Origin: Pocillopora damicornis
Lineage: Eukaryota
Reading direction: 5' to 3'
Assembly (NCBI RefSeq): GCF_003704095.1
Contig: NW_020847687.1
Coordinates: forward strand, 1 to 64,000
DNA length: 64,000 nucleotides
In this document: positions 18,221-38,052 of the stretch, piece by piece
Layout: the number at the start of each line of letters is the position of its first letter
How positions within the stretch are numbered: position 1 is the first letter of the stretch
Made by a program: the position numbers and the translations under genes
Notes under the pieces: generated by a model
What the model saw: the letters and a program-made list of their open reading frames with translations, nothing else
The model's database searches: none
Told to the model about the DNA's origin: nothing

Positions 18221-21200
18221 ATGTCACGTCGACGAAAGGTAAGACCGTTATTAATTTGTAAACACGATAAACCGTTTTGTGTGGGCGGTCGTTCGCAGAA
18301 ATGTCAAAGGGAAAAAGTAGCTGAGTTGAAACTTCGGCAATAAGCCAAGTGGAAATTAACAGATCGAAGATTTGACAACGTAGTCTAGAATCTGCAGTGT
18401 AAAAATTCCCAGTAGATTTCGCGATCTCCTTAAAAAGACATACTTCAATTAATAAATAGATTCGTTTTCGGGGCCTGAAGTTACGGTAAAGAAATTATGA
18501 AAGGGTTCGTACGCTGATAATTTGATCGGCATAATTAATGCCAGTTCAGCCTCATTGAAAATGAAACGTTTTATTTTTTTAGAGATCAGCTCTTCCGAAT
18601 TATGAGCTTCTGTGGTACATTTTTTTATCACAAGCTAATACAGAACCAGATCAAAACCTTAGTTCTTTTAATACCACATGATCATCAGTTAATTTATGTG
18701 CATTTCACGAAAAGCATCTAAACCGATGAATCAATCGAAAAATACTGTACAAGAATTAATTATATCTACAGAATTAATGAACTTGTAGATTGCACAGTTT
18801 AGTAGATTTTTTACTGCAAAGCGATTCCAGCTCTCAATTATGGTTTTGGTCAAAATCCTTTTAGGACAGCAAGATCTGACTTGACGTGACCACCTCTCTG
18901 GTCTAAACATTAGTCGCTGTTTTTTTTTTTGCCATGTTTGTTTTGACTGAATCTAATCTAGCGATTTTATTGTAGATTAGGACAAAGGTGCACACCCCAA
19001 ATCTACTCTCTCGCCAGTTCCAGTTTTCTTATCTTGTGATTGGCTTGTGACTTATTTTTACCTTTTATCTTCTGAGTTTGTCTTGACATGTTTTTTTTGT
19101 TCTTTTAGAAAAATATGTATAACATCCTAGCAGTGAGTCTCTTGTTCTCATTCCTTCCTATTTTTGAAATTCCAGTTTTGCTCCATGCTTTCTTTAAGTG
19201 GTTTGGATTCTTGAGATCCTCATCCTTTTTTCCGGGATATAATCAAGTTTTCCTCCTTGGGGTTGTAAACATTTATTGTCATTTCAGAAATGGAACATAT
19301 ATATTCATGGCACTTCATGTTTTCTAAGTCTTTCAAATGAAAGTGAAAAAGGTCCTAATACCAGACAGTTTAGTGCCAGGAAATTACTGTTTTTATTATC
19401 AAGTTAAGAGCTGAATTTGGCAGTGATAAATTTAGCTCTGCACACATTTATTTTCATCCTCTTTTTGGAGCAGAGTGGAGCAATTGAAACGACATCCAAG
19501 GATCAGAAAGCTGATAATGATGACGATAAATTAACAATGAATGATTCCAAGGTGGAATGGAGTGATCAGGAGAAGAGACGTCTTTTAGATGCTTTAAAAA
19601 AGTATGTTAACCCTCTAAACCCCTAAGAGTGACTGGCATCTAATTTATCCTCACAATATCACCCCTGAATAAAACATTAAGGTCATGAGAATAAGGGAAA
19701 TGATCACCAACTAAAGAAGCTTGTGATTGTTAAACAAATTCTCCTTTTCAGAACCTTAAGAAAATGTATAGAGAAAGTATGGAGAATATGCATACTGATG
19801 TTAGAGTGTAAGTGGGCCTAACCCTTTGACTCCAAAGATCTGATTGTCGATTCTCCCCATAAACTGCTATACATCTCTTAACCTTATAAATTAGCTAAAA
19901 GAATTTGGTTTTTTTAGATCAAGAGAACAATCTCTACCTGAGGGGTTGGAATATTTTCATTACATGTTTGCTGGATAAGTTAGCGAGATGGTACATGTTA
20001 ATCACTTCTAGGAGTTTAAGGGTTTAGATGCAATCATTGAAAACAAATGCGTATTGCATAAGGGCCCCCTTAATTTTTTTGGTCATTTTGGAAAGATCAA
20101 TCATTGTAAGTTACTGAAGTTCTGCCAATGCCTTTGCTTGTTTTAGCATAACTATCATTTGCTATCTCCAAGCAGCTGTGTATTCCCTCCTTTTTCTAGT
20201 AATTAAGCTATGAGTAACTTAATATTGTTTTTATTTTTCTTGTTTTAACCTTTTTGTCATTTATCAGATATAAAGAGCAAAAATAATAAGCCATATTAAT
20301 GGTTTTCAAATTTATTTCTGTCTCAATAATGCTTTTTATTTAACCAGCTGGAGGCTGACAGTTATGTTGTTAACATACTTCAGGGTAATGTGTGTGAAAT
20401 ATTGCTTTCATTCAATTTGACACAGAGATGAGGGAAAAAACAACTGGCGTTGGATTGCAAGACAAGTGAAAACAAGAACAACAGCACAGGTTAATTAGAA
20501 TGCATAGCATTTTGAATTTTGTTGTTTAATTTTCTTGGCTGATGAATTGAGCTGCTGATTGACATTGATGAATTGAGCTGCTGATTGACATTCTGTCAAT
20601 CAAGTTAAAAATGCTATCTAACCATCAGTATTTCTACATCCATGTTTTGTGTCTGAGTAACAGGCAAGAGAAGCTTATGAAATATTTTTCTACAGGTGAA
20701 AGACTTTGCTTCAAAACTCAGGACAGAAAAGCAAGGTTTGTTAACTTAACAAGTGAAGAAGTTATATTGAAATTTTGAAAATCATGCCTTAAAATTTCCT
20801 CATTTGTCGGTCTTCTGTGTTTTCTTGTTCAGCATCCAACAAGAGACCAATTGCACCAAAAGATGACAGTCCACTTGAGGTATTAAAAAACTTATTTCAT
20901 GGAAAATGACATGACTTTGTGTAACTTTCTGTGCTGCTGAATTTGAATGTTATTTTTTTATTATTATGTTGTGTGTCAAGGCATGGATTAATGTGACAAA
21001 GAGACTGAGAGGTGACAGTGATGTAGATGGGACTTGTATTCCTCAGGTATGAATTCTCCATTTGGCTTGTTAAACATTTACAGTACAAATAAGCTTAGTA
21101 CATGTGAAGATTCAAGTTATTCTTTCACATTCCTGCATCAAGCTTCTCAATGATGGTTTTGGTAGATTTCTGTATTGATCTTGAATTATCAAGCTGATTA

Positions 21201-24200
21201 AAGGATTGTTAACTGCAAATTCTGTGAACTTTTTGGATTTTTAAGCGTATCCACTAGGAATGACTAAGATCTCTCGTATGGGTGGGAGGTAGTATTCTTA
21301 ATTAATCTCATGCATTGCTCCTTTGTATGGCATTTTTTGTGAGAGTGTGAAATAATGTAGAGATTTAATTAAATTTTAGCTCACAATGATTTAAATCTAT
21401 TTGACCTATATGTCCAACAAAATTTTACATGTTGTTGTATATTGGCATTAAGTCAAACACAGTGGTACATGATGTTGTAGGTTCAGATTAAGTATAGTCT
21501 CAAATGGGTGTAGTCATTTTTAATTTCATATCATTTTGTTTGTTTTTCCCTATTAAGTACTTTATTTGCAAAAAAATCTGAGCGACATTGCCAACAAGAC
21601 ATATATGCAACTGCAAGCATAATCTCCAAAAGGAAAAAAAGTATTATGCAATGTTGCATGACATACTATCACTACTTTCTTACCCTTATATAGTAAGTGA
21701 GAGGACTTATAGCATAGTGGTGTGCCAATGAAGTTTACCTTAAATTCTTTCTTTACTATAATTTTTTAGTTACTTTATTACAAGACTGTATACATTTCCC
21801 TGATGAAAAAATTTTTGGAAATTCTAAGACCAATTGGTGACTGATTTGGTTCAAACTGTGTGCTCCTGCTGCTAATTTAAGGTTAAAGTTATAGATATAA
21901 GGTAGACTAAATTTATATGAGAAGCCACTGAGAATGGAAAGGCATCCTCCCAATGCCTTTTACAACAGAATCAAACTGCAGAAACAACACCATCGGAAGA
22001 ATTGTTGGAAAAGGAAGTTAACAGCTGCAACAACCATGTTGACCCTGGTATGGAGAAAAGTGACGAAAATAAAGAGGAATCACAGGATCCAGCAGGTGAA
22101 AGCACAGATGAAAATCAAACTGGTCCAGTATCCAAAATCGACCATGACAAAAACAACCATGAGATAGACTATATTATGGTAAGACTATGAGGATATCAAA
22201 CCTAACTGCACCAAGCAAAATACTCATCAGTGCCAAAATTTTTCCATTTAGAATTTAGTGCTGATCGGGTTCACTTCATACATGGTCTATGTGATGTTAT
22301 AAGAATGTAGAAAAAACTACATACCAGTACTTCATGGTTTAAAGCTGCAGTTGAAATAGGCAAAATGAGTAAAGTGATTTTAAAACTATGGGGCCTGTTG
22401 GTTCTTTTTTTTTACCTCTTCTGTGTTGGAGAGGGAATACTCTCTTTCACCAATTCAGTGTTTGTGCCCTATCCCTGTATTAGACCTACCACACTGTCAT
22501 CTTGAATATTTGCAGGAACATCAAATACAAAATGCCCATCTTACATGATTTCTTTCAGGTTATTTTAGAGCTAAATTAATTTTATAATCCCAAGTCACAG
22601 ATAAGGTCTTGGAAAAGGTAATGGAATTGAACGATTTCTAAAGATTGCAAACCCTGAGTGACACAAAGGTTCTTCTTGTCATTCTTTAATTTTTTGTTTT
22701 TGTTTTTTGCAGAAGGACATTTTGACTAATCAGAGACAAATGATGGAGAAAATTGATGTTTTAGACTCCAAACTTGAAAAGCTGCAGTCTAATAACCAAT
22801 CCTCACCATCAACTGTAATGGAATTGTTGGCTAAGATCAATGAAAGACTCGATCAGCTCAGCAAGAATGCATCCCATGCTTGTTGTAGTGGACCTATCAT
22901 TCTTCAAACAACTCGTCATGCCAATGTTGTACATCAACCTGTCCTTGATCCCTGTCTATCTTGTAGAGACATGATAAGAAACGACAGAACTGAAATTTTA
23001 CCAGTAGCTCCTTCAGAAGATAATATCTCAAGCATCTCATGTCCTTTAAACACAAATTCTGAATCAACAAAAGCTTCAAATGTAAATAGCACAGGGAATG
23101 ATTCTTCTAAGTGTGTTTCTGGGCAACAACATTGTGTGGATTTTGTCTCCGACAAGCAGAATGATTCTTACCCTGAACCACAAATTATGGTTACCAGCCA
23201 TCACACATCTTCTCCAAGAGTTACCTCAAGTGTTCATGGTGCACCTCCTGAAGATCTCTCTGAACCACCAAAAAACAATAAAGGTAGCGTTCTGAAAAAG
23301 GTGTCTTGTGTATCAGAAAGTGAGGACATTTCACCAAGTATGTCAAGTGAACAAACTTCGCCAGCCACTAAACATTCTTCAAAGACAGATGCTTATATTT
23401 TTCTCAGTAAAGAAAGTAGCTCCATGCCAAAGGGATCCCATTGTAAAACTGTAATTGTTAGTCAACCTTCAATCAGTGCGATAAACAACTCTCCTCCATC
23501 AGCAAAAGAAGTTTCAAATTTTTCAAGACAACAGCGAATTTCATCCTCTCAAGCTGAGTGCAGAAATGTGTCTTCTCCTTCATGTACTCAACATTTTATA
23601 ACAGCATCCACACATGTTCCTTCTGTAAACAGGTCACAAGTGCGAATTACACCCTTATCCCAGCCGTCTTTCAGTGGTGGTGAGATTGTGTTATCTAACA
23701 GCCATGCTGTTGGAAAAAATCCATCATCACATGCAACAGAAATGCAGCTTGATTATAAATCCACGGCAACAGTTTTTCCAGACACTTCATGTACTGTCTC
23801 CAGCCTGTCATCTGGACAGAGCCATTTTACTCCACAACGGGCCATCTTGGTGGCTAATGGCTCTACCAGCAGTACACCATCACATAATACATGTGATAAA
23901 CCCTCTTCAGGTGTTCAAGTGCTTCAAGAACCTTCACCTCCAGAGCAAAAGAACATTCCGCCAGGTTACATAGCCCTTTCACACACTCCAACTGTTCCCC
24001 CATCTCCAAGCACACCAAACAACACAACTGCATGGCAGCCTCAAACAGTGATGTCAACAGGGTCTAGTCATGCCATGCATCAAAGAACAGAGTTCCACAG
24101 TTCTCCAGCCTCACATGCCATTCTTTCAACACCTGGTGAGTGAATTTAGACATGCATGCAGGTAATAGGTACACATTAAGACATGTGACTCTAATCTTTT

Positions 24201-27200
24201 TCAAGCCCAATATTTCTGGTAGAATCATACAAAAAAGAAAATGGAAGTCAATTTAAATGCCAAATTAAATAATGAAATAAAACTAATAATGCTTATCATA
24301 TCTCTTTATGAGGGCAGATACACTTGTTACAACCAAATTAATTATATATAAATTATTTTTAACCTTGTTTCAGTCTTTGTCAAAATAAAAAGAATGTGGA
24401 TTATCCTTTGGTTTATCAAAATATTATATTTTGCAAGATTTGGTAGAAATGGGTGTTCTTAATTCAAATTTACAGGACATCTAAGTTGCAGAAATAAGTC
24501 ATCAACTGAAAATGGTTCTAAACCCATATTAAAGACATTTGAAAAATTTGCAGAGAGATGAATCTTATGCATTGATGCCAATTTTTATTTAAAAAAAAAA
24601 AAAAAAAAGTAAAAGAAAAATGAATGGACAGGACTTTTCTTTGACTTTTATTTCTTGTGCTAATGGATTTTTTTTTTGCTCTCCAGATGAAGTTAGTGGT
24701 AGACAAGACAAAGTCTCAAGACGGGATGTTCTCAGTGCAGGTACATCTATTATCAGTTTATCCCTTAAACTCCAAGTAGTGATTAACATGTAACTTCTCC
24801 CTTTAATATCCATACATTATCCAACAAATAGGTAATGAGAATATTGAAAATATACAGATAAAAGTTGTTATCTGGATTTAAAACTAAATTCTCATCACTA
24901 ATTTATAAGGAAATGTTTAGAATCACAATCAGATCTTGTGAGTGAGAGGGTTAACATTTATGTTGACTAAGTTTTGCATTCAGTTACTTGAAAGAGTGAG
25001 AAAAAAGTGGGAACAGTCTACCTTTGATATTTTTAGGCAAGATTTAGAATGAGAAGCTCAAACCTTAGACTTTCTGTTAAAGATTTTTAAATTAAAGTAA
25101 CTGATTCCTGTTATTGTTCCCCCTTTCAGCCATGTTACTCAGTACCTATGTCTCAGAACATCCTAATCAACAGGATCAATTACACTGGCAGTCCTGCCTC
25201 AATGCAATAATCGCAGATAATCAAGGAAAAAACCAAGATCAGCCCAGACAAGATCTTTCACAGCTTGGTAAGAGTGTCATTTTTTTGGAGCATGTCATGT
25301 CAGTGTATGATCATGTTCCCATAACCAAAGAGGTTATTTTATTCCAGTTTCAGTGGGTGGTAGTCCACATGTCCTGATGATTCAACATGAACTAGAAGAT
25401 GTCTACAAGAAATGCAGAACTCGTCCACAGTTCTTTTCCCTGCGCTTGGCTGAGAGGCTATTTGGACTTGATGTAATGATGAAATCCACGCCTAATGGGA
25501 TTGGAGGAAAAGCAGCTCTAAACCCAACAATTTTGGATGCAATCAAAAGTAATTACTTATATCTTAACCCTCTATCTCCCAAAAGTGATTAACATGAAAC
25601 TTCTCCCCATAATATCCCATACATTATTCAGCAAACAGGTGATGATAATATTCAAACTTATCAGGTAGAAGCTGCTATCCTGATCTAGCACCAAGTTCTC
25701 ATAACTAATTTTCAAGGAAATGTGTAGGAGCTAGTGGGAAAAATTAAAAGAATTAACAATCAGATCTTGGGAGTTAAAGGGTTAAGTGAAGTAAAGTCTC
25801 AACAAACATTTGCATAAGCACACGACTAAAACTACAGCCTGGCCAGCTTGAAAAATCCTGTTTTTAATTAACCCCTAAAATCACAAGATCTGATTGTTGA
25901 TTCTCCCTTGTAGCTGCTACACAATTTTTTTGTCAATAAGTTATGAGAATTTGATGTTAGATCAAGGTAACAACTTCAACCTGATAATTTTGAGTATTCT
26001 CAGTACCTGTTTACTGGATATTGTATAGATATTATAGGGAGAGGTTACATGTTAATCACTTCTGGGAGTTAAAGAGTTATTAAGTAAAAGAGTAAATACC
26101 TTCATTGGACCCTCAGAAGAAGGCCTTAGGTTATTGCCAGTACTCAGTTTTGATAGACAGGGTGAAAGACAAATGAATACAAGGGGAGATTTGGTGTCAG
26201 ATCAAGATAACAACTTCTACCTAATAACTTTGAGTATTCTCATTACCTGTTTTCTGAACAATGTATGGATATTTTAGGGAGAAATTACATGCTAATCACC
26301 TCTGGTAGTTAAAGGGTCAATAAGACCAAATTATCTCATAGGGTTAAAGACAGACAGGCAGAAAGATGAACTGTTTAACTGATTGACTAATTGACAGATC
26401 ATTGGATCAAAACTAATCATCTAATTATAATAATACCCTCAGTTTTCTAACTTTGTTTGGATCAAATGTTTGAAAAAGAAGCAAATATCTGTAGGTACTG
26501 GTATATTACTCTTGAAGTTGTGAAAAATGTTAACTTGGTTTCTCTGTTTATCTCTTTTTAGCTGAAGTCCTTCAGAGGTTTGGTTCAGGAGTGTCTCCTG
26601 AACAACAGACTGAGATGTGGAAAGGCTGCATGACCAGTATTGCTCAGAGGTGCAAAAGACTCCGAAATCCACGGAGGAACAGGTCACCAATGGTCACAGT
26701 AATCAGTAATGACAATGAAGGGCCCCCTTCTATGGCAGTGGGCAACGAATTGTGTCTTAACATGGCTGGAAATCCTCAAACTGAGTCAGATGATGAAGAT
26801 GAGGAATTTGATATGGATAATTTGAATCATCCAAGTTCACATAAAACTCCAACTCTAGTCAGATTGTCATCTGACAGTGAACAAGAGGATTCACATGGCA
26901 GCATTCACAATGTTTCTTGTAGGAGTGGAAACATTAAGATTCACAACGTGAAACAATTGGAAGACTCTGGAAAGCAGATGAAGCCAGCTGTTAATTCAAG
27001 GGAAGAATCTGGGGATGAGGGAGCAGCTGTACATGTTCCTCCAGGCATCGACCCAGACATAACAGTTGTTCACTTGCCATCCACTCTGGAAACAGCATTA
27101 CAGCCTAAAGAATTAAACAAACAACTGGGCATAGCTCTCTCTCGAGCCAATGGAGCAGACACCTTTATCAGATTGAAAGAAAGTGAAAGTTCTGATGCTC

Positions 27201-30200
27201 ATCCCACACATATTCAGGAACCCTATATGCAGACAAGAGACACTGTGTCACCTGGGCATAATTTACCTGTTGCTTGCAAATATTCTGGAGACCGTCCACC
27301 TGTAGAAGGAAATATTTACAAGCCTGGTGGGACATCTGCTGAAAATATCATAGTGTCCGGCATTAAAATGACTCCAGACTGTAAGTTTATGTAAATTATA
27401 GGCCAATATTTTACAGTGAATGTACTATAACCACTTAAAATACTTAGAGTAACAGTACTGCTCAGGAATTTGAAACCCAAATAATTTGACTGGATTCAAC
27501 AGGGTTGGTATGGGTCCTGGAAAACCTGGAAAATCCTGGAATTTTATTTTGACATCTCCAGGACTGGAAAAAGACTGGGTACTGGAAAGTCCTGAAAATC
27601 TTCTTAACTCAAGGGATAGAGTTTTTAGAATTTTGCATGTCCAAAATGTATTTTAGACCATAAGGAGGATTGATTTTGAACTCTTGGGAATGAAAGGGTT
27701 GAAGGTGACCTGGAAAAATTAATCTGAGTCCAGGAAAGGTCCTTGAAATTTCTTCCTGAAAAAGGGTACAAACCCTGCACATGTGTGAGAGTATTGTGCA
27801 CATCCACCAAATGTATGCAAACTTGAACAATGTTTGCTCTTTGGCTTTGATTTAGCTGACTTTCTCTTTCCTAAAGATCTACATGTATTTTGCTGTGCAG
27901 CTATGTTATGTGGTGCTTTTATCCGTGAAGTTTCTTGCTTCATGGTTCAGACATTTTTGTGCAAAGGCAGCACTTAGAGCTGCAGTTCAATGTTTTCAGT
28001 TCAACCATCCACCTTTATTCTGTGCTCATTAATCTTTAAGAGACCTAAAATTTGACAATACGAATGGCTTGAGTGCAAATACTGTGTGTTGAAGGTTGTC
28101 CTTCTTTTTAGCTGTCATGGTTAACTGTCTGGTTCTGGATTGATGTTATCTTTTCCAAAATGCATAAGTTGAGTAGACAAGTAAGTTAGCAGCCTCAACA
28201 ATTGGCTGATGAGTTATTCCATTAACAAGAATTTATGTTTCTTGAACAACTGTGACAGGCCCTTTCATCATGATTTTGATCCAACTACAAAATGGTGTCA
28301 ATAAATCTTTTGTAACAGGCTGTGCTCTTGCTGAAACTTTCACAAGGTAGCATACTTGTTCAACGACATGTGCCAATGGCCAATCTGAAAGTACCAAAAT
28401 ACAGTCTTTTCTATTTCCCAGTAGATCATACTACAAGTATTATCCCCCACAAAAATATCCCAAAAGTTGTTCAGGAAGAGTTGAAAAGTCAAGGTCAACA
28501 TGCAGAGATTCTCCGAATAAAGGGTACGTGTCTAATCTCTTGCTTTAATTGTTATTTTATTTTATATTTTCATTGTGCACATCTGAATTTATGGCAGATG
28601 TACCGTAGACGTATTATTGGGTATTTGTTTTTTTTTTTAAAGTTATTTTCATTGTCCTTTTGAGATTGCAGTGCTTCCCTCTCAGAAGGATTGACTAATT
28701 GAGACTGTTTTTTATGTTAATTTCTTCTCTAGATGATTCTTCTAAATTGAGTCAAATAAAAGTAAAGTATATTTACCTGGAGGATTCTGGAAATGCCCGT
28801 CTTTTCATACAGCAAGACCAGGCCATGGAGACACCAGGTGAGGCAAACGCCACACCAGAAAAGCCCCATGTGCATTTGCAACAGCCATCTACTCAACCAG
28901 CACCTCAGGAATTAGCAAAAGATGATGATGCTACACTCCTTTTACTTCACTCACGGTCAGCATCAGAGCAAAACTTTGCAGTGCAATTGCTGCGTCATTT
29001 CTTTAAGCCACATGAACTTGATGGCCGAAATGTTAGAGGAGTTGGAGGAAAGCTTGCCTTAAATCCTGAAAAAATCAGTAAAATCAAAGGAATTGTATTT
29101 AGGTTTTTTCCATCCTCTCTTGCACAGCAAGAACTGTTGTGGCGTGATTGTCGAAGAGCAATTGACGCATATCTACGTAATAGAAAGCCCAGGACTTCTG
29201 TTGGGTCAAAGCTTTCTTCTTGAGCATTTTTTTAAGTTTGATTGTTTAATTTAAGCTATATTATCATTTAGTTCCCAATGCAATCTAGAAGTGAGCCTAG
29301 GAATTTTGTTAGGTCAAAGTTTTATTCTTAAGCATTTTATACAGTTTGTTTGTCTGTAAAAGTAATTTTCACTAAATCTTAATAAAAATTAAAGTTATCA
29401 TCATTTTGTGAGGTTATTTTCTTGCCATATTTCCTTAGTAAAATTTGATACAAGTTTGCCTCATAACTGAGGCAAACTTGTGGTTGCACCTTTTTTACAC
29501 TCTATCTGTTTGTTACTCTGACAAATGGCTAATGCTGGAAACATCTTTCAAAGTTCTTTACAGTGGCCAATTTACTTTGTCAATGCAGATGAAATGCCAA
29601 ATTTTCTTGTATTACCCCTACTGACGCAGAACCTAAGTTTCTGTAGAAACTTTCTTCCTTAATTCATTTATGCATCTTTTTGTCTTTCTGGTAGATGGTT
29701 ACTTCTTTAATTCATTGCCATATGGTAGCATCAACCTTTTTCTTTAAAACTAGATGCTAGCATTCACCTGCTACTCTGGTTTGTTTCTTATGAAAAGAGC
29801 AACTGATTGAGTTGTTAAGGGTAGTTTGTGTATGTCACCTGCTGTTGGTGACATACTATGGTACTTCATCATTGTTGTTTGGACTTGTCACTTAGAAATT
29901 GATGAATTTTTTATGAGGGCATCCCTTACTCAATATTAGTCTTATTAAAAAGTCAAAATACCAACAGCAAAAGGTCAGGCAAATTCCTTTTTTACGTAAT
30001 GAGTATAACCACAATGAACTGCCACCAGCATTATTTTGTGAAAATTTTCATTCTGGTTAACCAGTTTACCACACCCCAAGGAATGAAAAGTCTTATGTAT
30101 TGACTGTGTTTGTTTGGGTGACATGATTTGCAATTAACAAACATCTGAGCAGTGCTGTTACTGAAATAAACTAATATTCCTACAGTAATTATCATACAGC

Positions 30201-33200
30201 TATTGCAACTCAATAACAAGGCATTTGAGATTTTATAATGTCCTTGTTAGGGATTCTGTTTAGTAGACTGCTTACCTGGATTGAAGGGTGGCTTATTGAC
30301 AAAGGAGGTCATATGTGTAGCAGATGAATGAACAACATTGCATGCCATGTGCATAAAAACACATGAAACAAAGATTTTAGTTGATAAAATCCTACCATAA
30401 CCTGCAATTGTAATACCAATTATTTAACTCTACAGTATAATTGATGCTGCAGTTTAGGGATAAGGTGTGTAACAGAAATTTCAGGAGTTACTTCTAGATA
30501 GGGGAGGTTGACACTTGGGAAGAATCAATATTTTAATTGAGCTTGGTTCTGAGACTCGTACATATTTCACATGTGGTAATTTTTAACAAACACTGAATTT
30601 TATGGTAACTTAATTTTAAAAATCTTGAATGGTCAGTACTGTTGCTATGGTGTTGGGTATTGTAATTGTGATTTAAAAGGATGATGATAATAACTGTGAT
30701 GGGATGATTATGGTTGTCGTAGGGGTGGCAGTTGCAGTGGTAGTATTGATAATAATGGATAACATTTCTGAGTCTTCAATACTTAACCTTTCACACTCTA
30801 ACATCACTATGCATATTCTCCATACTGTCCTTTATACATTTCTTAAAGTGCAGACAAAGAGAATTTGTATAACAATCAAGGGCTTCTTTAGTTGTTGATT
30901 ATTTCCTTATACTATATTATTTATATAACCTTCATGTTTGATTCAGGGTGATTCTGTTGGGAGAAATTAGATGTTAATCACTCTTATGGGTTAATGGGTT
31001 AACTTGTCTTTTGTTTATTGATTTACATGTCAAATAGACTCCTATGTGCTGGTTGGAGGAAACCCAAATGTGGCTCTGCCACGTCAGAAGTATCTTGATT
31101 CACTCACAAGATCAGGGCAGCCAACACACTTTGCTGTCCGTCTGGCAGAGTTGACTTTTGGAGATGAGGTTCTTAGGGCATCAACAGTGACAGGAGCCAA
31201 ACCTGGCACTTTACAGTTAGATCCAGCAGTCATTGATGCCATTCAAAGTAGGTTAATGATGTTCACTTCTTAATGCTACAACAGGATATTAATTGAGCAT
31301 TCTTGAATAGTTTCCAAGTTCCCAAAAGATTATTGTATGGGGCTGCTTGATTCTCTCAAAAATTGTACATGTCGGTGATCCTTGACAATAAGGCTGGAAA
31401 GTTTATGACACCCTCTCAACCAATTGGATTTAAATCTTACACCAGTTGTTACTTCATCACTCCTGTTTTGATGTCCCTGAGACCAGGTATGAGTCTGTGT
31501 TTAAAGATACTAATTATTTTTTGATGGTTTTTAATTTTTTCATGCATTAGCTGAGGTGATCGACAGGTTTTTAAAAGACCTAAACAAAGAACAGCAAGCA
31601 GTAGTTTGGCGGAAGTGTGTCACAAGTATAGCCACAAGGTGTAAAACCCTTCGGTACAACAGATCCAAGGTGCAGATGGCACAAGGCGAACATCAGTGGA
31701 CAATTCATCCTAGCCATGTTACAGATGACAAACCACAGTAGACAAAGGAATGGCAACTTGTAGAACTGTTTTCCCTTAAGAAGCTACCAATACATGCAGT
31801 TTCTCAACTTTCAAAGAAAATTTCATTCTACTATCCTATGAAAATGATCATTACTTAGTGATATTTATTCATATCTAATAGCACTTTGTTCGTAACTTAC
31901 ACTTCATAAATTTCATTTGAGTTTTTGTTTGAAATAAATTAGGTGGTATTCTGTGAGTATTTTTTAGGGACATGGAAAATTTCCTAGCTGGTCAAACAAG
32001 GCAATCTGCTTAGTGGTAGGGAAGTTTGAGTGTGTTGTCAAAAATGGCAGTGTGGTAGCAGAAATAGCATAGATGTGAGCAATGAATGATATCTGGTTTG
32101 CATGGCAGGTTGTTGGTGAGCCTGTGTACTTGCTAATTTAAAAAAAAAATGAAAGCAAACTAATTTTCTTGGTATTGTGAATGTTTTTAGAGGGTTGAAG
32201 TGTGAGATGTGCATCAAACAGCAGATACAAAAATTATTTACTTTTTAATTATGAAATGAAGGCGTAGAAGTTTATGATGCTTACTTTCAAGAGAAAATAA
32301 TTTCATATCACAATTTTAAAGTCATAGAGTCTTAAAAAGAGGCTTTATTTAATTTTTTTTTTTTTTGAGTCTTTAGTTGTACCCATAGTGTCACCATTGT
32401 TATGGACAATAATTTTAATAGCTTAGCTCTTAAGAAATTATATATTAATCTGTGTTAAGTTGAGCAGTGTCCAATATAGGAGGGGACCTAAAGCTAATTC
32501 TAAGTTATTTGTTGACCCACTTCAAAATAATTATAATTTCAGATGAATGTGGCATAAGTTAAATTTCCTTTATAAGTAAGGAAGTAAATCTTAAATTGAA
32601 ACAAAGCTAACTTTCAGTGTCATTCTTTTTTCTGTATTGAATTAATATTAAGGTAGTATCTTTTGAACAGTTTTAGCTTACTACAAAATGACGAGATGAG
32701 AGGATTCATCAGAATGAGAGAATGTGAGGGATGATTTTGTCAATTTAATGTCAAATGAAGGTGTTTGGTTTTTTTCTCTTTTTTCACTGGAAAGGCAAAT
32801 CAGAATAGTTTTAGGTGGCTTATACTTTTGACTTTCAGGGGCCCCCAGGGCTCATTTAAGTTATTTGTAGCCTCTCTTTAAAAGAATTATAATTTCAGAT
32901 GACTGCTGCACAAGTTAATTTTTTTTTAAATAAGGAAGTAAATCTTGTAATAACAACAAAGCCAGCTTTTAATGTTATAATTTTTGCCTGTTTTGAAGCA
33001 ATAATAAGTATTCATTGAATAGCTATAGCCTACTCTATGCACATTCATTTTTCACATAATAAGGTGAGAGGATTCAACAGAATGAGAGAAAGTGAGGTGT
33101 CATTTTTTCAATTTCATTGTTTAAAAAAGGATTGGGTTTTTTTTGTTTGTTTTTCACTGGAAAGGCAAGTACAGTTTTGAGTTTGTGTTTGTTTGAATTG

Positions 33201-35998
33201 ATTATAAAGGGAGAAACATTTAGTCCCTGTGACGACCAGTTTCTTGTTCCAGTTCCTTTTATGATAGAAACTCGGAATAATCTCCTGCAACTATAAAAAC
33301 TAGAACTGGAAAAAGCTTCTGAATAAAGTACATGTTACTTAAATGCACTTTTAATAGATGTACAGGTCTTAAGAAACATTTGTTTTTGCACACACTGATG
33401 CAATAAAAAGACCAGTTTAATTTGTGAAGTTGGTAATAGCTGTCTGAAATTCATGCACTGAATGCTGCTGAAAAGTTTTTGATTATGTACTTCCTTACAA
33501 TTAGTTAACTTAACTTACCAAAACCAAGGAAGGAATGTGTGGGGGAAGCACAGGGGCACCCCACTCTTCCAATAAGATTTTTAATAACTAGGTAGTTTCC
33601 AAAGGAAAATTGGAGACCTAAACCCTATCCCCCCAAAACTTTGAACAAAATTAGGAAAAAAATTATTTACCTGATAAAGCACATCACAATTCAGCTACCC
33701 CTAGACAAGAGCCCCCCCCCTTTCCATATGATCAGCTTAAAAGGACTAAATTTTTGAACAATTTTTATGGTACTTAACTGTAGGAAGTACTGCATACTAA
33801 AGGAAATAAGCAGAAAAGGGTTGATGTAGGTTTTAATTAAGTGTCATCAAACTGGGCACAAATTGTACTTATCATGGCTGATCAGAATGAAATAAGACAT
33901 TGCAAGGAATCAGCAAGATGCTGATGTGTGTAAAAATATAGGTGACTAAGCAAGTTGTAATGGGTTTCAGCTACCCCTCAGATTGGTCAAGATTTTTCTT
34001 AAGGTTAACAGATAGAATATATATTCCTTTTGACTCTCAATTGAAACTTGCTCTGTTGCTGCATACCTTCTGAAGAAAATTAAGTTATGCTTAAAATGCC
34101 TGATATCCTTTTTTACATCCATACAGATTATGACAATTGCAGCCATGGAGCCAGTGCAACCTGGAGATGGTAAGAAAACATTTTGAAATGTCTTTAACCC
34201 TTTAACTCCCATGAGTGACCAAGAGAGTTTTTCTCGTTACAATATCAACACAATGTCAACTAGATAAGTGATGGGAATAAAGAAAAATATCAATTGGGGG
34301 ATAATTAGTTGATCCCATACTAAATTCTCTGAACTAACATTGAAAGAACTGTATGGTTGACAGTAAGGAGAATTACAAAATTTTATCTGGGAGTTAAAGG
34401 GTTAATGTATCTAGCCAGAGTTAAAGAAATTATGCATAAGAGATTTCAAAGACATTGCATCCTGAACTAGGAAATGAAAATTGTGAATGAGAAATCTCGA
34501 GTTCTTTTTCAAACCTTCCTCCAGAAGTTTTTGGCTCAGCCTTGAGACAAAGCACTTTTAAATTAATTTTCAAATTAACCAAATAGAGTCTAACTATTGT
34601 AAATCATTTGTTGAGTGACAAGTAAATAAATGTTTCTCTTAAGCTCAGGCATTAATTTTCTCATTTTGGTGTGCATGAAATGTATTTACCAAGACTATCT
34701 GTGAAACTGGATTAAATTCTGGGGAGGGGGTAGGGATAGGCTGTAATGAACTAGCACCCCATCCAGGGGCAATAGACATACTCCTTGTCACTATATGCTA
34801 TGGAAGGCAGGGTGTGCGCCAAGGATGTGCCACCTGATCTTAGAGTGGCCACAATTTCATTATTAAAAACATGTTGCATGATTTGATGCACAGGGGAGGC
34901 TTCATCACCAGATTACAGTCAGATATATACCTTGCTAAGTAGAGTGATGCGAGGTCAGCCACCTCCTGACCTCACCCCTCTTAGTAAGTAATGTTCTGAA
35001 TAAATATAATTTTAGGCCATATCTAAGGAATACCGGTACATCCCCAACCTTAGAAAAGTCTATCATGGAGAAATCTTATACATAGAGCTAGCTCCTCGGG
35101 TTGTGTTCTTTAATAAGGTTTTTTATTCATTCAGTTTTCTACTTCATCTAGGGCTGTTAATGAGAAAATGCCAAGGACACTCCTGACAAATTGTTGAGGA
35201 ATTATGTGTTATGGACTGACAGGCTATTGTGCTGTAAATACCCCCTATAATTTCACGGCGTTTCAGGCTTATTTTTAAGTACCCCACTCTTAGAACTAAA
35301 GACTTGCTCTGGGTTTTCATTTTTAGAGGAAGTTAGCACTTTTCTATCTTGCACTTTATCCTCATTTTTTGAGCAACAACAACACTTACATACTTTGAGC
35401 TCAACGTTTGTCCCAGAATTGAAAGAATTATTTGCTGCATACTAAGAAGTGCTTGAGATGTTTCTAAATCCATAGCTTTTGTGTTCAACTCATTTACTTT
35501 AAATTGTTGATTTTATTTTTATTTGTCTACATAACCTTGTAGCTCTCAATAACATTCTCATATGAACAACTTTTTCATTCACCATCACACACAGGATTCT
35601 GAACAAAGACTCGTTAATGTTTACATTCTTGACCCCAAATGTAAAACTCTAATCAATATAATGAGTCTTTTCCTTCTTTTTTCACTGCAGGTGCTCGAGT
35701 TATCTTGGACTTGATGGCAGACCTTGATCAACGTCTTGCAGGTCATGACATTAGTAGCCAAGTAAACTTTATCACTAACAAGTACAAAGAAGTGATGCAG
35801 AGTCAGGATACTGCCTTATCTTCAGAGCAGACACAAGTTCCTTCAGGTCAAGCTGAAGCAGCATGCAGCACCTCTGATCCAGGTGCAAGTAGTTCTGGCA
35901 AACCAAAGACACCACTGTCTTCTCTAAACCCCTTGAATGTTCCAGTAAAATTACTTAATCTGAAGAAATCAACTCCAGTTTCCAGCTCACAGTCATAA
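18221..35998 (+). CDS. SNAPC2: snRNA-activating protein complex subunit 2 (SNAP45)-like, Myb/SANT N-terminus
   Basis: Exons: 18221-18238, 19474-19601, 20426-20489, 20696-20735, 20833-20879, 20981-21046, then 34127-34169, 34894-34983, 35691-35998. Spliced product: [40 protein letters not shown] (Myb)...[13 protein letters not shown]...IPQ|IMTIAAMEP...[16 protein letters not shown]...SARVILDLM...[11 protein letters not shown]. This matches SNAPC2 motifs as I recall them (PIEVW, QVLTIAATEP, DFEKIYKYLS, SAVVLDLL, LNPFLVPLELL). Confidence 0.85.
20541..20592. repeat. 26-bp direct tandem duplication
   Basis: gatgaattgagctgctgattgacatt occurs twice in tandem. Confidence 0.9.
21969..29223 (+). CDS. 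Coiled-coil, low-complexity and two-BEN-domain coding unit inside the SNAPC2 intron
   Basis: Exons: 21969-22178, 22713-24135, 24687-24740, 25130-25267, ~25348-25548, 26562-27380, ~28422-28523, 28733-29223 (stop), all phase-consistent. BEN1: [12 protein letters not shown]...[17 protein letters not shown]|TEV...[17 protein letters not shown]2: [11 protein letters not shown]...[17 protein letters not shown]...[20 protein letters not shown] at 29381. Confidence 0.85.
25564..25785. mobile_element. piggyBac-type MITE (subfamily C)
   Basis: TTAACCC...GGGAGTTAAAGGGTTAA. Related copies near 24760, 25868, 26190, 19820 and 57150. Confidence 0.75.
27500..27777. mobile_element. Non-autonomous DNA transposon with CAGGGTT TIRs
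   Basis: cagggttggta ... tacaaaccctg, with internal cctggaaaa repeats. Confidence 0.65.
29516..29652 (+). repeat. Decayed short interspersed repeat with a hammerhead-like core (copy 1)
   Basis: Aligns by eye with 54405-54550 (ctctgacaaa..gctaatgc...gtggc.aattta...ctga.gcag..cc..agttt...tagaaa). Confidence 0.55.
31038..31741 (+). CDS. Alternative terminal BEN-domain module (exons 31038-31247 and 31551-31741)
   Basis: [23 protein letters not shown]...[11 protein letters not shown]|TEVIDRF...[17 protein letters not shown]. It has a phase-1 acceptor and no ATG of its own. Confidence 0.82.
32490..33170. repeat. Diverged ~370-bp tandem duplication downstream of the BEN3 stop
   Basis: aattataatttcagatga...taaggaagtaaatctt...gagaggattca.cagaatgagagaa...ttttcactggaaaggcaa occurs twice. 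Confidence 0.85.
34194..34405. mobile_element. piggyBac-type MITE (subfamily A, full length)
   Basis: TTAACCCTTTAACTCCC ... GGGAGTTAAAGGGTTAA. Confidence 0.85.
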
Positions 35999-36256
35999 TC
36001 AGTTGAAGTAAATATGTAAAAACTATGTAGCTTTTAAACTCTTCACACATTTTTGTCTATTATACTCTAAGGTTCTCAAACAACAATTATTTCTGACAAA
36101 TACTTTATGTTCTCTCCTTCAATACTCAATGAGTGATGTGGCATTTCAGTTCATGTAATTGTATTGAATCCATTTCTTTCAATTTGAAAGAAGCATTTGT
36201 TGTCTCATTAGTTCGACAATTTCATACACTCCATCCCTTTCTTGGTGGGGTGTTGT

Positions 36257-36757
36257 TTAAGCTAAGGAAGGATTACTTGAATAAAGATTTGATTTCTCAG
36301 CTTGTTCTAAGGCTTTCTGTAGGTTGGTATCAAATAGTTCACACCTGCAAGAAGAGAGACAGTAATACGTAAGCCTCTAGGTTACCCTAATCACAGTTTT
36401 TTTAAAAAATTGAGTTTTGTAGATACTTAATTTCGAGGGGAAGGCAATTGAATATTTTACACGCTTCATACTTACAAAGAGATCTTGTTTAATAAGAAAA
36501 GAAAACTTCAGAATGTGTGACAAGAGTAAGATGATACTTTTCCTGGAAAAAGGCTAATAAAAAATATAATTTTTTGGCCCTTATGCTAAGTTATGGTGCA
36601 ACACTGTCCATTCTTTACTGGCAATTGTACCTTATTGGCATGTCCAGTGAGTAGAATGGGTTCTTCAGGGCAAAGTCTGAATACAGCTCATAAATTTTTT
36701 TGAGGAAAATATCCATTCCAAGTTGTTTTGGGTCTGTTAATACAATGAACTTCAAGC
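36257..36757 (-). CDS. TRAPPC4: TRAPPC4, last two exons (36631-36757 and 36257-36344)
   Basis: [43 protein letters not shown]|[17 protein letters not shown]...*. Confidence 0.93.
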
Positions 36758-37124
36758 CTGTAGGGAGTTCACAGAGAATGAGTAATANNNNNNNNNNNNN
36801 NNNNNNNNNNNNNNNNNNNNNNNNNNNNNNNNNNNNNNNNNNNNNNNNNNNNNNNNNNNNNNNNNNNNNNNNNNNNNNNNNNNNNNNCTTATTACCAACA
36901 AAAAATCCTGATAGTCTATGGAATCATTGACATTTTCGATGCCCTAACCGTAAAAAAGTACGCTTCTGTCTCTACTATTTTGCCGCTGGTAAGCTTGTTT
37001 AATGTTGCCTAAGCAACGAACGATAATTTTTTTCAAATTTTTTGTTTCACCTCACATATCAAGACCTGGAATTTTTTCTTTAATTTTCTAAGACCAAGAG
37101 CTATTTTATTTACTTCTAATTTAC

Positions 37125-37307
37125 CTCCGAGGAATTTTCCAATTCTAAGGTGGGAATACTGGCTTGAATATCGGCAAAAATATTTTCAAACACCGACTTG
37201 AGTTTACATGCACCAGCGCCTGCCTCAAAGTTTCCTGAATTCCTCACGGAAACTTCTTCCTCAAAGCTTTCGTCGCTACTGGAAGCAGACTCTTCTGGCT
37301 TCCACAT
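37125..37307 (-). CDS. Probable first exon of the DNAAF8-like gene (on the inverted contig)
   Basis: MWKPEESASSSDESFEEE...VFENIFADIQASIPTLELENSSE followed by a GT donor. It resembles the C16orf71/DNAAF8 N-terminal motif (ILKAVKDQLPSLDSDS, from memory). Confidence 0.65.
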
Positions 37308-37447
37308 GTTTTATCAAAGGCAGCACCCTAGCAGTCGGTCTATTTCCTAGAAAAAGCACAATGACACAAGAAAGGTTTCACAGCTTGGAAGAAGTCTGAC
37401 GCCATTTTAGGCTCAAACTGTCGCCAGGCCTTCACTCGTCATTCAAG
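37308..37447. promoter_or_regulatory. Compact bidirectional promoter between TRAPPC4 and the DNAAF8-like gene
   Basis: Divergent ATGs 140 bp apart. YY1-like motifs on both strands: gacgccatttt and aagatggcg. Confidence 0.65.
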
Positions 37448-37865
37448 ATGGCGATCTTTAGTGTATACATTCTAAATCGAGCAGGAGGACTTATTTATCA
37501 TTACGATCATTTTACACCCAAAAGCGAGGTGGAAAAGACATTTAGCTACCCTTTAGATATAATGCTTCGCGAAGATGATAAGTTGGTCGTAATATTTGGT
37601 GAAAGAGATGGCATAAAAGGTAATGATTTTTTCCTTCACCTTGTCTCGCTTTTTTTAAACCACTGCTAATGAAATACTCTTTTCTGTTAGTTGGCCATGC
37701 TTTGCTGGCAATAAACGGTGAACCTGTAACAGGGAAACGCTTGCCCGACGGAAGAGAGGCAATGGAAGTCATAAAAAACCAAGATAACTACCCAATATCC
37801 TTGAAGTTTGGTCGTCCAAAATTGACAACAAATGAACGGATCATGTTAGCAAGCATGTTTCATCC
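37448..37865 (+). CDS. TRAPPC4: TRAPPC4, first two exons (37448-37619 and 37691-37865)
   Basis: [20 protein letters not shown]...[11 protein letters not shown]...FGERDGIK|[10 protein letters not shown]...[26 protein letters not shown]. Confidence 0.95.
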
Positions 37866-38052
37866 GTAAGTTATTCAAGTCCTAAAAACACATGTGAAAA
37901 ACTAACTAATTTCATGAGAACGAATCTTAGATCACGTTCCCGCTGTTTTGAGNNNNNNNNNNNNNNNNNNNNNNNNNNNNNNNNNNNNNNNNNNNNNNNN
38001 NNNNNNNNNNNNNNNNNNNNNNNNNNNNNNNNNNNNNNNNNNNNNNNNNNNN

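Follow-up and report, generated by a model that had tools for sequence, protein, structure and literature searches.

Two alternative endings of a coral BEN-domain gene: a conserved BEN3 module and a BEN2 unit apparently captured from a BEN-solo gene

Why should an intact BEN module lie downstream of the stop codon and polyadenylation signal of a gene that already encodes BEN domains? The question is raised by a 64,000-nucleotide stretch of the Pocillopora damicornis genome (contig NW_020847687.1 of assembly GCF_003704095.1, positions 1 to 64,000 of the forward strand; hereafter the window), in which a multi-BEN gene, here called the host gene, seems to end with its BEN2 exon at 29223 and is followed by a third module, BEN3. 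The original prediction took BEN3 for an orphan terminal exon pair that arose by cassette duplication and is reached through alternative splicing and polyadenylation. Our analysis makes it highly probable that a single host donor at 27380 feeds either of two endings, an ancestral one in BEN3 and one in BEN2 that was captured in a single coral lineage.

The module past the 29223 stop and the AATAAA at 29381 is as intact as had been described, and its two exons together form a complete BEN-type module. These exons, the BEN1 exons with which they have to be compared and the 3' untranslated region (UTR) behind them are placed as follows (here and below, a slash marks a splice point).

25348-25548, plus strand: BEN1a, first half of BEN1; the acceptor is 25348 or 25333, either one in phase 1, and reads confirm neither.
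26562-27380, plus strand: BEN1b plus linker exon, checked for frame; ends /GTAAGT, the phase-1 donor common to both endings.
31038-31247, plus strand: BEN3a, first half of BEN3, in phase 1 at entry and exit.
31551-31741, plus strand: BEN3b, second half of BEN3 and C-terminus, closing with the stop TAG at 31739-31741.
31742-33402, plus strand: presumed 3' UTR in the BEN3 isoform; AATAAA motifs lie at 31933, 33322 and 33402.

BEN3a follows an acceptor AG at 31036-31037 (context caaatag/AC), its first two bases completing a split codon, and carries 69 full codons (SYVLVGG...DAIQ) plus one base before the donor GTAGGT, whose GT lies at 31248; BEN3b follows an acceptor AG at 31549-31550 and reads T-EVIDRF...KPQ. 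Translation confirmed that the module has no start codon and is entered in phase 1, a phase kept in seven other coral assemblies. Among the phase-1 donors that had been proposed to match this entry, those at 24135, 25267, 27380 and 28523 stood, the one at 24740 offers a GT whose frame homology did not confirm, and the donor actually used is 27380. The internal intron falls at the same residue and phase in BEN1 (DAIK/T/EV) and BEN3 (DAIQ/T/EV), as had been noticed; the BEN1a donor is placed after DAIK plus one base, and the BEN1 halves split as ILDAIK/T/EVLQRF between the exon end at 25548 and the next exon start at 26562. BEN3b and BEN1b are 51% identical over 37 residues (BLASTP, E 6e-13), and the sole relative of BEN3a in its own genome is BEN1a of the same gene. 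When each exon was searched singly against Pfam PF10523, BEN3a was matched as a half-domain at 17.3 bits (E 0.0057; cut-off 23.2) and neither the BEN1 exons nor BEN3b gave a match; in the spliced Montipora ortholog, which is 82% identical to the window BEN3 over both halves, BEN reaches 43.1 bits at residues 1047-1119. The pattern of BEN3 exons, splice sites and phases lies far beyond chance.

Whether the two endings are used was read from RNA contigs of four public runs (X1, X5, X13 and X18) from four studies, mapped onto window positions 27300-33299. The features of the competing BEN2 unit are given first.

28376-28421, plus strand: 5' part of the captured gene's presumed former first coding exon, with an ATG at 28376; intronic for the host and a possible start of an autonomous BEN2 transcript.
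28422-28523, plus strand: mini exon, the rest of captured exon 1 as judged by homology, in phase 1 at entry and exit.
28733-29223, plus strand: BEN2 terminal coding exon, apparently the start of captured exon 2 fused to the BEN part of exon 3, with the stop TGA at 29221-29223.
29381-29386, plus strand: AATAAA of the BEN2 isoform, found by motif search.

The joint 27380>31038 (GT..AG) was present in three runs from three independent studies (X1, X5 and X18), and the joint 27380>28422 (GT..AG) was found in all four runs, including those three, as was 28523>28733; the joint 31247>31551 was seen in two (X5 and X18). The short sides of the branch junctions measure 30 letters, as de Bruijn unitigs give at branch points, and a unitig branch point at 27380 is the signature of alternative splicing. 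Both routes remain in frame, since T(27380)+TA gives Leu (..MTPD-L-DHTTS..) and T+AC gives Tyr (..MTPD-Y-SYVLVGG..), and the two endings are served by separate in-frame stops and poly(A) signals: the TGA at 29221-29223 with AATAAA 29381, and the TAG at 31739-31741 with AATAAA 31933, 33322 and 33402. In Stylophora the same choice is annotated by RefSeq, where isoforms X1 and X2 (XP_022800911/2) end in the mini exon and BEN2 and isoform X3 (XP_022800913.1) ends in BEN3. The BEN2 and BEN3 exon pairs are true alternative last exons, and the alternative splicing to BEN3 that the original prediction had proposed is borne out. A Dscam-type, mutually exclusive internal cassette was also considered and rejected, both alternatives being terminal with stops of their own; neither a joint from the BEN2 exon to 31038 nor one from 28523 to 31038 occurs among the joints listed. 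Exact-protein look-ups of P0020 and of Stylophora isoform X3 (P0082) returned no record.

On the BEN2 side, the terminal coding exon is covered by RNA contigs, of which some end at 29438 (X1) and 29416 (X13) and others extend to 29719-29810, a contig end being no proof of cleavage. On the BEN3 side, contig 19 of X18 covers BEN3a, BEN3b and 350 bases of the 3' UTR, contigs are continuous from the BEN3 coding sequence to 32085 and 32263, and others cover 32152-33299. The presumed BEN3 3' UTR also holds a diverged tandem duplication with a period of ~360 bp (32480-32600 and 32840-32960), over which the contigs show many indels relative to the window.

These contigs bear directly on the idea that BEN3 sits in a separate transcription unit, with a promoter in 29.4-31 kb, or forms the 5' part of the SNAPC2-like gene further downstream. 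A promoter of its own at 29.4-31 kb, or no expression at all, had been named beforehand as what would speak against BEN3 being an ending of the host gene; instead, RNA contigs join 31038 to 27380. The GenBank model of SNAPC2 in Stylophora (L031:17726-22552) does start inside the host gene, ~250 bp upstream of BEN3a, a start that is probably a prediction artefact, and run X13 covers 32846-33299 at depth 16 without a contig on the BEN3 exons, which could be a distal UTR fragment or a separate transcript. Set against this, BEN3a lacks a start codon and is entered in phase 1, BEN3b has a conserved stop and runs unbroken into 3' UTR contigs with no onward splice, and annotated orthologs carry BEN3 as the C-terminus of a long protein. 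We give a separate unit practically no credence.

If both endings are real, which of them is the older? A word-based protein search with BEN3a found 14 open reading frame (ORF) fragments in other assemblies, at 75-97% identity, and their similarity ends exactly at ..AIQ, the BEN3a donor. Owing to the length filter of that search, its matches were all ORF calls of prokaryotic style on genomic contigs of corals. Six loci from that search were compared, together with the Stylophora locus. Five assemblies (L003, L004/L005, L006, L019 and L020) present the coiled-coil exon, BEN1a, BEN1b plus linker, BEN3a, and BEN3b plus stop in that order, with a linker-to-BEN3a intron of only ~150-890 bp, and no match to the mini exon or to BEN2 was found at any of these five loci (L004 standing for L004/L005). 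The peptide at the linker-exon end and its GTAAGT donor are kept in seven other assemblies, as are the BEN3a acceptor, phase and donor and the BEN3b acceptor, with 75-100% amino-acid identity; the BEN3a amino acids are 100% identical between the window and Stylophora, and the BEN3b orthologs terminate within ~20-30 residues of the same point. The ratio of nonsynonymous to synonymous substitution rates (dN/dS) across corals, a check put forward with the original prediction, is 0.06-0.15 for BEN3a in pairwise comparisons at dS 0.06-2.6 (six of the seven assemblies). Annotated proteins that end in the BEN3 ortholog are found in Montipora foliosa (XP_068686789.1), Acropora millepora (XP_029186100.2) and Oculina patagonica (XP_078380047.1). 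BEN3, the sole ending of the orthologs without BEN2, is thus ancestral and serves as the constitutive C-terminus in every other coral that was examined; the stop at 29223 belongs to the derived ending, and the exons behind it form the conserved one.

The same comparison speaks to the origin of BEN3 by duplication. On another view, BEN3 would be a young copy of the BEN1 cassette that landed beyond the gene's true stop and has only lately come into use as an optional ending, and the shared intron position and phase, together with the fact that BEN1 and BEN3 are each the other's only relative in their own genome, would suit such a history. However, BEN1a and BEN3a are only 36% identical (E 6e-12), and both modules occur in every coral ortholog examined, BEN1a being kept in all orthologous loci and BEN3 being the sole ending wherever BEN2 is missing; it is BEN2, limited to Pocillopora and Stylophora, that is the younger element. 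The sea anemone Nematostella vectensis also has a protein (LOC5512772; P0046, XP_048581668.1) in which 6-7 BEN1/BEN3-type modules stand in tandem, every one of them with matches to both exon halves; the BEN cassette has been amplified serially there. A recent origin of BEN3 is therefore very improbable in our estimate. BEN1 and BEN3 are better read as old tandem duplicates, whose duplication is older than the divergence of the sampled corals; of the cassette duplication proposed at first, the kinship stood, which fits a duplication within the gene, and the view of BEN3 as an orphan add-on did not.

Attention then shifts to BEN2, the element that would have turned a simple C-terminus into a choice. 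BEN2 at this position was found in three places only: a Tara metagenome scaffold that is almost identical (L021), a Stylophora RNA contig with 88% nucleotide identity (L028), and the Stylophora pistillata genome (L031), where the exons and introns of the locus alike are colinear with those of the window. Searches of its own genome covered an assembly of 234,350,878 bases in 4,393 contigs; the published 234 Mbp assembly of P. damicornis has been described as probably under-assembled (PMC9646523), a caveat for absences in it. There BEN2 has 32 matches to a dispersed family, several of which are BEN domains at the C-termini of long single-exon ORFs. The sequences most closely related to it come from other corals, whose BEN-solo ORFs are 60-77% identical over the BEN part. 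In a maximum-likelihood tree the Pocillopora and Stylophora BEN2 sequences are paired (97/97) and lie unresolved among these BEN-solo ORFs, apart from three long-branch paralogs of their own genome, with BEN1 and BEN3 of the host very distant.

Other corals show what the source may have looked like. In assembly ERZ25067879 the host gene has no BEN2 (L020) and is on another contig than a BEN-solo ORF from the family with which BEN2 groups (L029, in which only the BEN exon is recognisable). The BEN-solo gene of another locus (L030) has three exons, coding for an N-terminal part, an acidic part with a nuclear localization signal (NLS), and a coiled coil plus BEN, and all three have homologs at window 28379-29187: exon 1 (MSLRASLKLPKYGLFYFPIDQTTSVIP...) matches 28379-28525, the opening ~40 codons of the BEN2 exon correspond to the start of exon 2 (DDCSKLREMETTFLEDPENAHLF..), and exon 3, from just past the coiled coil, matches the remainder of the BEN2 exon. 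The captured unit retains the first parental intron (28524-28732) and is without the NLS-rich end of exon 2, the second parental intron and the coiled coil. The BEN2 pair is a rearranged copy of an unlinked three-exon BEN-solo gene, set into the last host intron in the pocilloporid lineage (Pocillopora and Stylophora). Origin as a retrocopy is ruled out by the retained intron 28524-28732; a partly processed or deleted copy that lost the second parental intron may still be the source.

The acceptor of the new ending lies inside what used to be coding sequence. Within former exon 1 the codons for F-Y-F-P-V read ttctatttcccag/TA, which places the acceptor at 28422, and this acceptor (cag/TAG) is a tandem NAGNAG site (window 28419-28427). 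Such a site explains why isoforms X1 and X2 of Stylophora differ by one residue (MTPD-L-D-HTTS vs MTPD-Y-HTTS).

The parental locus can be traced in the P. damicornis genome itself, in a syntenic position at C429:20108-21054 (L034). Its exon 1 is 86% identical to exon 1 of L030 and, with the latter, is the basis on which 28376-28421 was assigned; exon 2 and the start of the coiled coil are present, synteny extends to the upstream relic, and an unrelated tail closes the ORF. No BEN domain was detectable in the 13 kb downstream of this locus, a result subject to the under-assembly caveat. With the same caveat, the intronic BEN2 is the best-preserved BEN of its orthogroup in its own genome.

A transposon as the origin of BEN2 was rejected, for the insert is single copy in DNA except for two young small repeats, and Pfam gives BEN only. 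No transposase, terminal repeats or target-site duplication were seen at the insert, though no search was aimed at the latter two. Tc1/mariner-like relics (DDE_3, HTH), conserved between two other coral species, do occur on the opposite strand there (L029:7472-8655 and L030:6146-6409), 1.3-3.6 kb upstream of BEN ORFs P0031 and P0018; the window intron holds no such relic.

A gene copy that arrived with its own start codon might have remained a gene in its own right. BEN2 could then be mainly an independent nested gene, started at the ATG at 28376 from an intronic promoter, with the joint between host and BEN2 a by-product of read-in and BEN3 the sole functional C-terminus of the host. From 28316 onward the frame is open, and Stylophora retains the MANLKVPKY start, which matches the start of parental exon 1; the Stylophora RNA contig is spliced at 28523/28733 and unspliced upstream of 28422; and contigs over 27351-28451 reach depth 13-25 in X1 and X5 (3-7 in X13 and X18), compared with 6-10 for other introns in X1 and X5. 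Intron contigs reach back to the host donor, however, and a retained intron fits these data as well as an internal start does. The joint 27380>28422 is in frame, occurs in every run at a contig depth comparable to that of the BEN3 junction, and its acceptor and frame are kept in Stylophora, where RefSeq isoforms X1 and X2 join host exons to BEN2. We consider a mainly independent BEN2 unlikely. An autonomous BEN2-solo transcript alongside the fusion is possible, by analogy with the solitary PGBD3 expressed from the CSB gene (PMC2268245), and the two readings are not exclusive.

Several points weigh against a host donor feeding an ancestral BEN3 and a captured BEN2, and should be kept together. 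The RNA data are de Bruijn contigs, not raw reads, from which isoform abundance, transcript starts and poly(A) sites are not readable, and run X13 shows the BEN2 route only. Intron 27381-28421 is covered at about one fifth of exon depth and the Stylophora RNA contig runs unspliced across acceptor 28422, and for these reasons some BEN2 transcripts may start at an internal promoter instead of arising through the fusion. Sampling between Pocilloporidae and their next relatives is thin, which leaves the date of the insertion coarse. For the fold of BEN3 a stand-in paralog was modelled (P0049, 69% identical in the exon A part), with a mean predicted local distance difference test score (pLDDT) of 55.6 and 70-81 in the core; in this low-confidence model the first 11 PDB matches are all BEN domains, all of them weak, the best being BANP (E 0.11, probability 0.98). 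Finally, not every BEN domain binds DNA (PMC8887127, PMC5737856), and BEND3 BD1 is among those that bind proteins instead (PMC5737856).

Under the favored reading, of one donor with an ancestral and a captured ending, a copy of the BEN-solo gene came to rest between the linker exon and BEN3a in the pocilloporid lineage. By one route, 27380 is spliced to 28422 and 28523 to 28733, and the transcript ends in BEN2 with the stop at 29223 and the poly(A) signal at 29381 of the captured gene; by the other, the captured unit is skipped, 27380 being spliced to 31038, and the ancestral BEN3 ending is used with its own long 3' UTR. The choice would be a competition of proximal splicing and cleavage after 29381 with splicing to the distal acceptor at 31038. 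The pyrimidine tract of the BEN3a acceptor is poor in the window and in Stylophora (0.55-0.60), compared with 0.75-0.9 for other acceptors of the host gene, and by eye the tracts at this acceptor are visibly stronger in several species without BEN2. Two repeats lie in the last host intron, on either side of the captured unit.

27496-27785, strand not assigned: high-copy repeat of ~285 bp, with many copies of 75-77% identity in its own genome.
30783-31005, strand not assigned: SINE/MITE-like (short interspersed or miniature inverted-repeat element) high-copy repeat of ~220 bp that stops 32 bp short of the BEN3a acceptor, with many copies of 79-82% identity in its own genome.

Both are missing from the colinear sites of Stylophora, having been inserted in Pocillopora only. 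A first look with the whole intron as query gave 4330 repeat candidates in its own genome, and summed RNA-contig depth over 30783-31005 rises to ~36,000. The weak BEN3a acceptor and the 220-bp repeat would fit a tunable competition between the endings, and are suggestive only.

What would such a choice change in the protein? BEN2 is a well-recognised BEN domain, matched by Pfam PF10523 at 34.4 bits (cut-off 23.2, E 2.5e-8) over profile positions 1-75 of 76. Its AlphaFold model has a pLDDT of 87-94 over residues 70-150, and the top PDB matches are BEND3 BEN4 with DNA (E 2.7e-4), BEND3 BEN3, BANP, BEND6, NACC1 and Insv. BLASTP found no similarity between BEN2 and BEN3a, and a sequence search of solved structures gave no match for the BEN2 exon or BEN3a; the profile of the full-length ortholog gave only a weak SANT match there. 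Between Pocillopora and Stylophora the dN/dS of BEN2 is 0.12 in the BEN part and 0.32 outside it, with apparent relaxation in the mini exon. Judged by these ratios, both BEN2 and BEN3 are under purifying selection. Several BEN domains bind DNA sequence-specifically (PMC4281564, PMC8887127, PMC11472053). Because BEN2 and BEN3 come from very different subfamilies, are both constrained and belong to a family with sequence-specific members, one SANT/coiled-coil/BEN1 body may be brought to different DNA sites or partners by one ending or the other; membership in very different subfamilies fits a difference in DNA-binding specificity and does not prove it.

A bolder scenario would tie these observations together. 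The BEN-solo gene would have been effectively relocated in the pocilloporid ancestor, the parental locus on C429 keeping exons 1-2 and the coiled coil and losing its BEN; the nested copy would serve both as an alternative host C-terminus and as an autonomous BEN-solo protein; and a regulated choice, helped by the weakened BEN3 acceptor, would retarget the host. We put this forward tentatively, as possible and rather doubtful. If true, the relocated BEN2 in its dual role would be a gene fusion caught in progress.

The host gene codes for a coral nuclear protein that starts with a Myb/SANT domain and a coiled coil, continues through a disordered region, BEN1 and a linker, and closes with a C-terminal BEN domain. 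Two further exons were placed in the AT-rich window.

19471-19602, plus strand: exon of the N-terminal Myb/SANT-like domain, found by tblastn with the Stylophora LOC111338659 proteins (84% identity).
22713-24135, plus strand: large exon with the coiled coil and a Ser/Thr-rich disordered region, an open frame with 71% identity to the Stylophora protein.

Pfam places Myb_DNA-binding at residues 22-64 of the Montipora ortholog, and the donor at 24135 is in phase 1 with the context G/GTGAGT. Own-genome searches with BEN3a and BEN2 revealed no additional BEN cassettes in the window. Downstream (window 34800-37900) lie the SNAPC2-like gene and genes for TRAPP subunits (Sybindin-type), a neighborhood shared with Stylophora and Acropora-like loci, and runs of N (assembly gaps) occur near 36.8 kb and 37.95 kb of the window.

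A common N-terminal body joined to alternative 3' exons, each a different DNA-binding domain, is familiar from lola and mod(mdg4) of Drosophila. Those genes have tens of tandemly duplicated sets of zinc-finger or FLYWCH exons and rely in part on trans-splicing, whereas the coral locus has two endings only, and of unrelated origins. A closer parallel is the CSB-PGBD3 fusion of primates, in which a gene inserted in an intron of a chromatin factor is spliced as an alternative ending (PMC2268245, PMC3459987). In both cases a gene for a DNA-binding protein lies in an intron, an acceptor at the inserted ORF receives the upstream host exons by alternative splicing, the insert brings its own stop and poly(A) site, and the host protein and the fusion are co-expressed, with the insert possibly expressed alone. 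The difference is that PGBD3 replaces most of the host protein, whereas here the copy of a cellular BEN-solo gene replaces the last domain only, BEN for BEN, in reef corals. As in the new transcription-factor architectures of host-transposase fusion genes (bioRxiv 10.1101/2020.05.07.082677), the acceptor comes with an inserted DNA-binding module, which becomes an alternative 3' exon; unlike in those, the module does not demonstrably come from a transposon, and donor and host both already had BEN domains.

Within the BEN family, the layout of BEN2 resembles the C-terminus of BEN-solo proteins like Insv and Elba1/2 (PMC4281564, PMC8887127, PMC11472053), and the host, like BEND3, is a multi-BEN protein. 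Neither BEN2 nor BEN3a has a sequence-level match to any solved BEN. The papers retrieved on Insv, Elba1/2, BEND3 and BANP (PMC4281564, PMC8887127, PMC11472053) report no swap of BEN domains by alternative last exons, and a literature search on coral BEN domains and on alternative terminal exons of BEN genes found nothing relevant. Both endings are already known as automatic RefSeq models in Stylophora, for which we found no paper discussing them, and the general mechanism, alternative last exons through gene capture, is known as well.

The locus offers a clean, datable case of a chromatin or transcription factor that would have gained an alternative domain of DNA-binding type through a neighborless gene copy in an intron and an acceptor in old coding sequence. 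Such captures are well documented for vertebrate transposases; for ordinary cellular genes, or in cnidarians, the record is much thinner. The case also corrects a likely bias of annotation, in which the stop at 29223, the derived ending, would be taken for the end of the gene and the conserved exons behind it be overlooked, and it provides a tractable pair of isoforms in a heavily sampled genus of reef corals.

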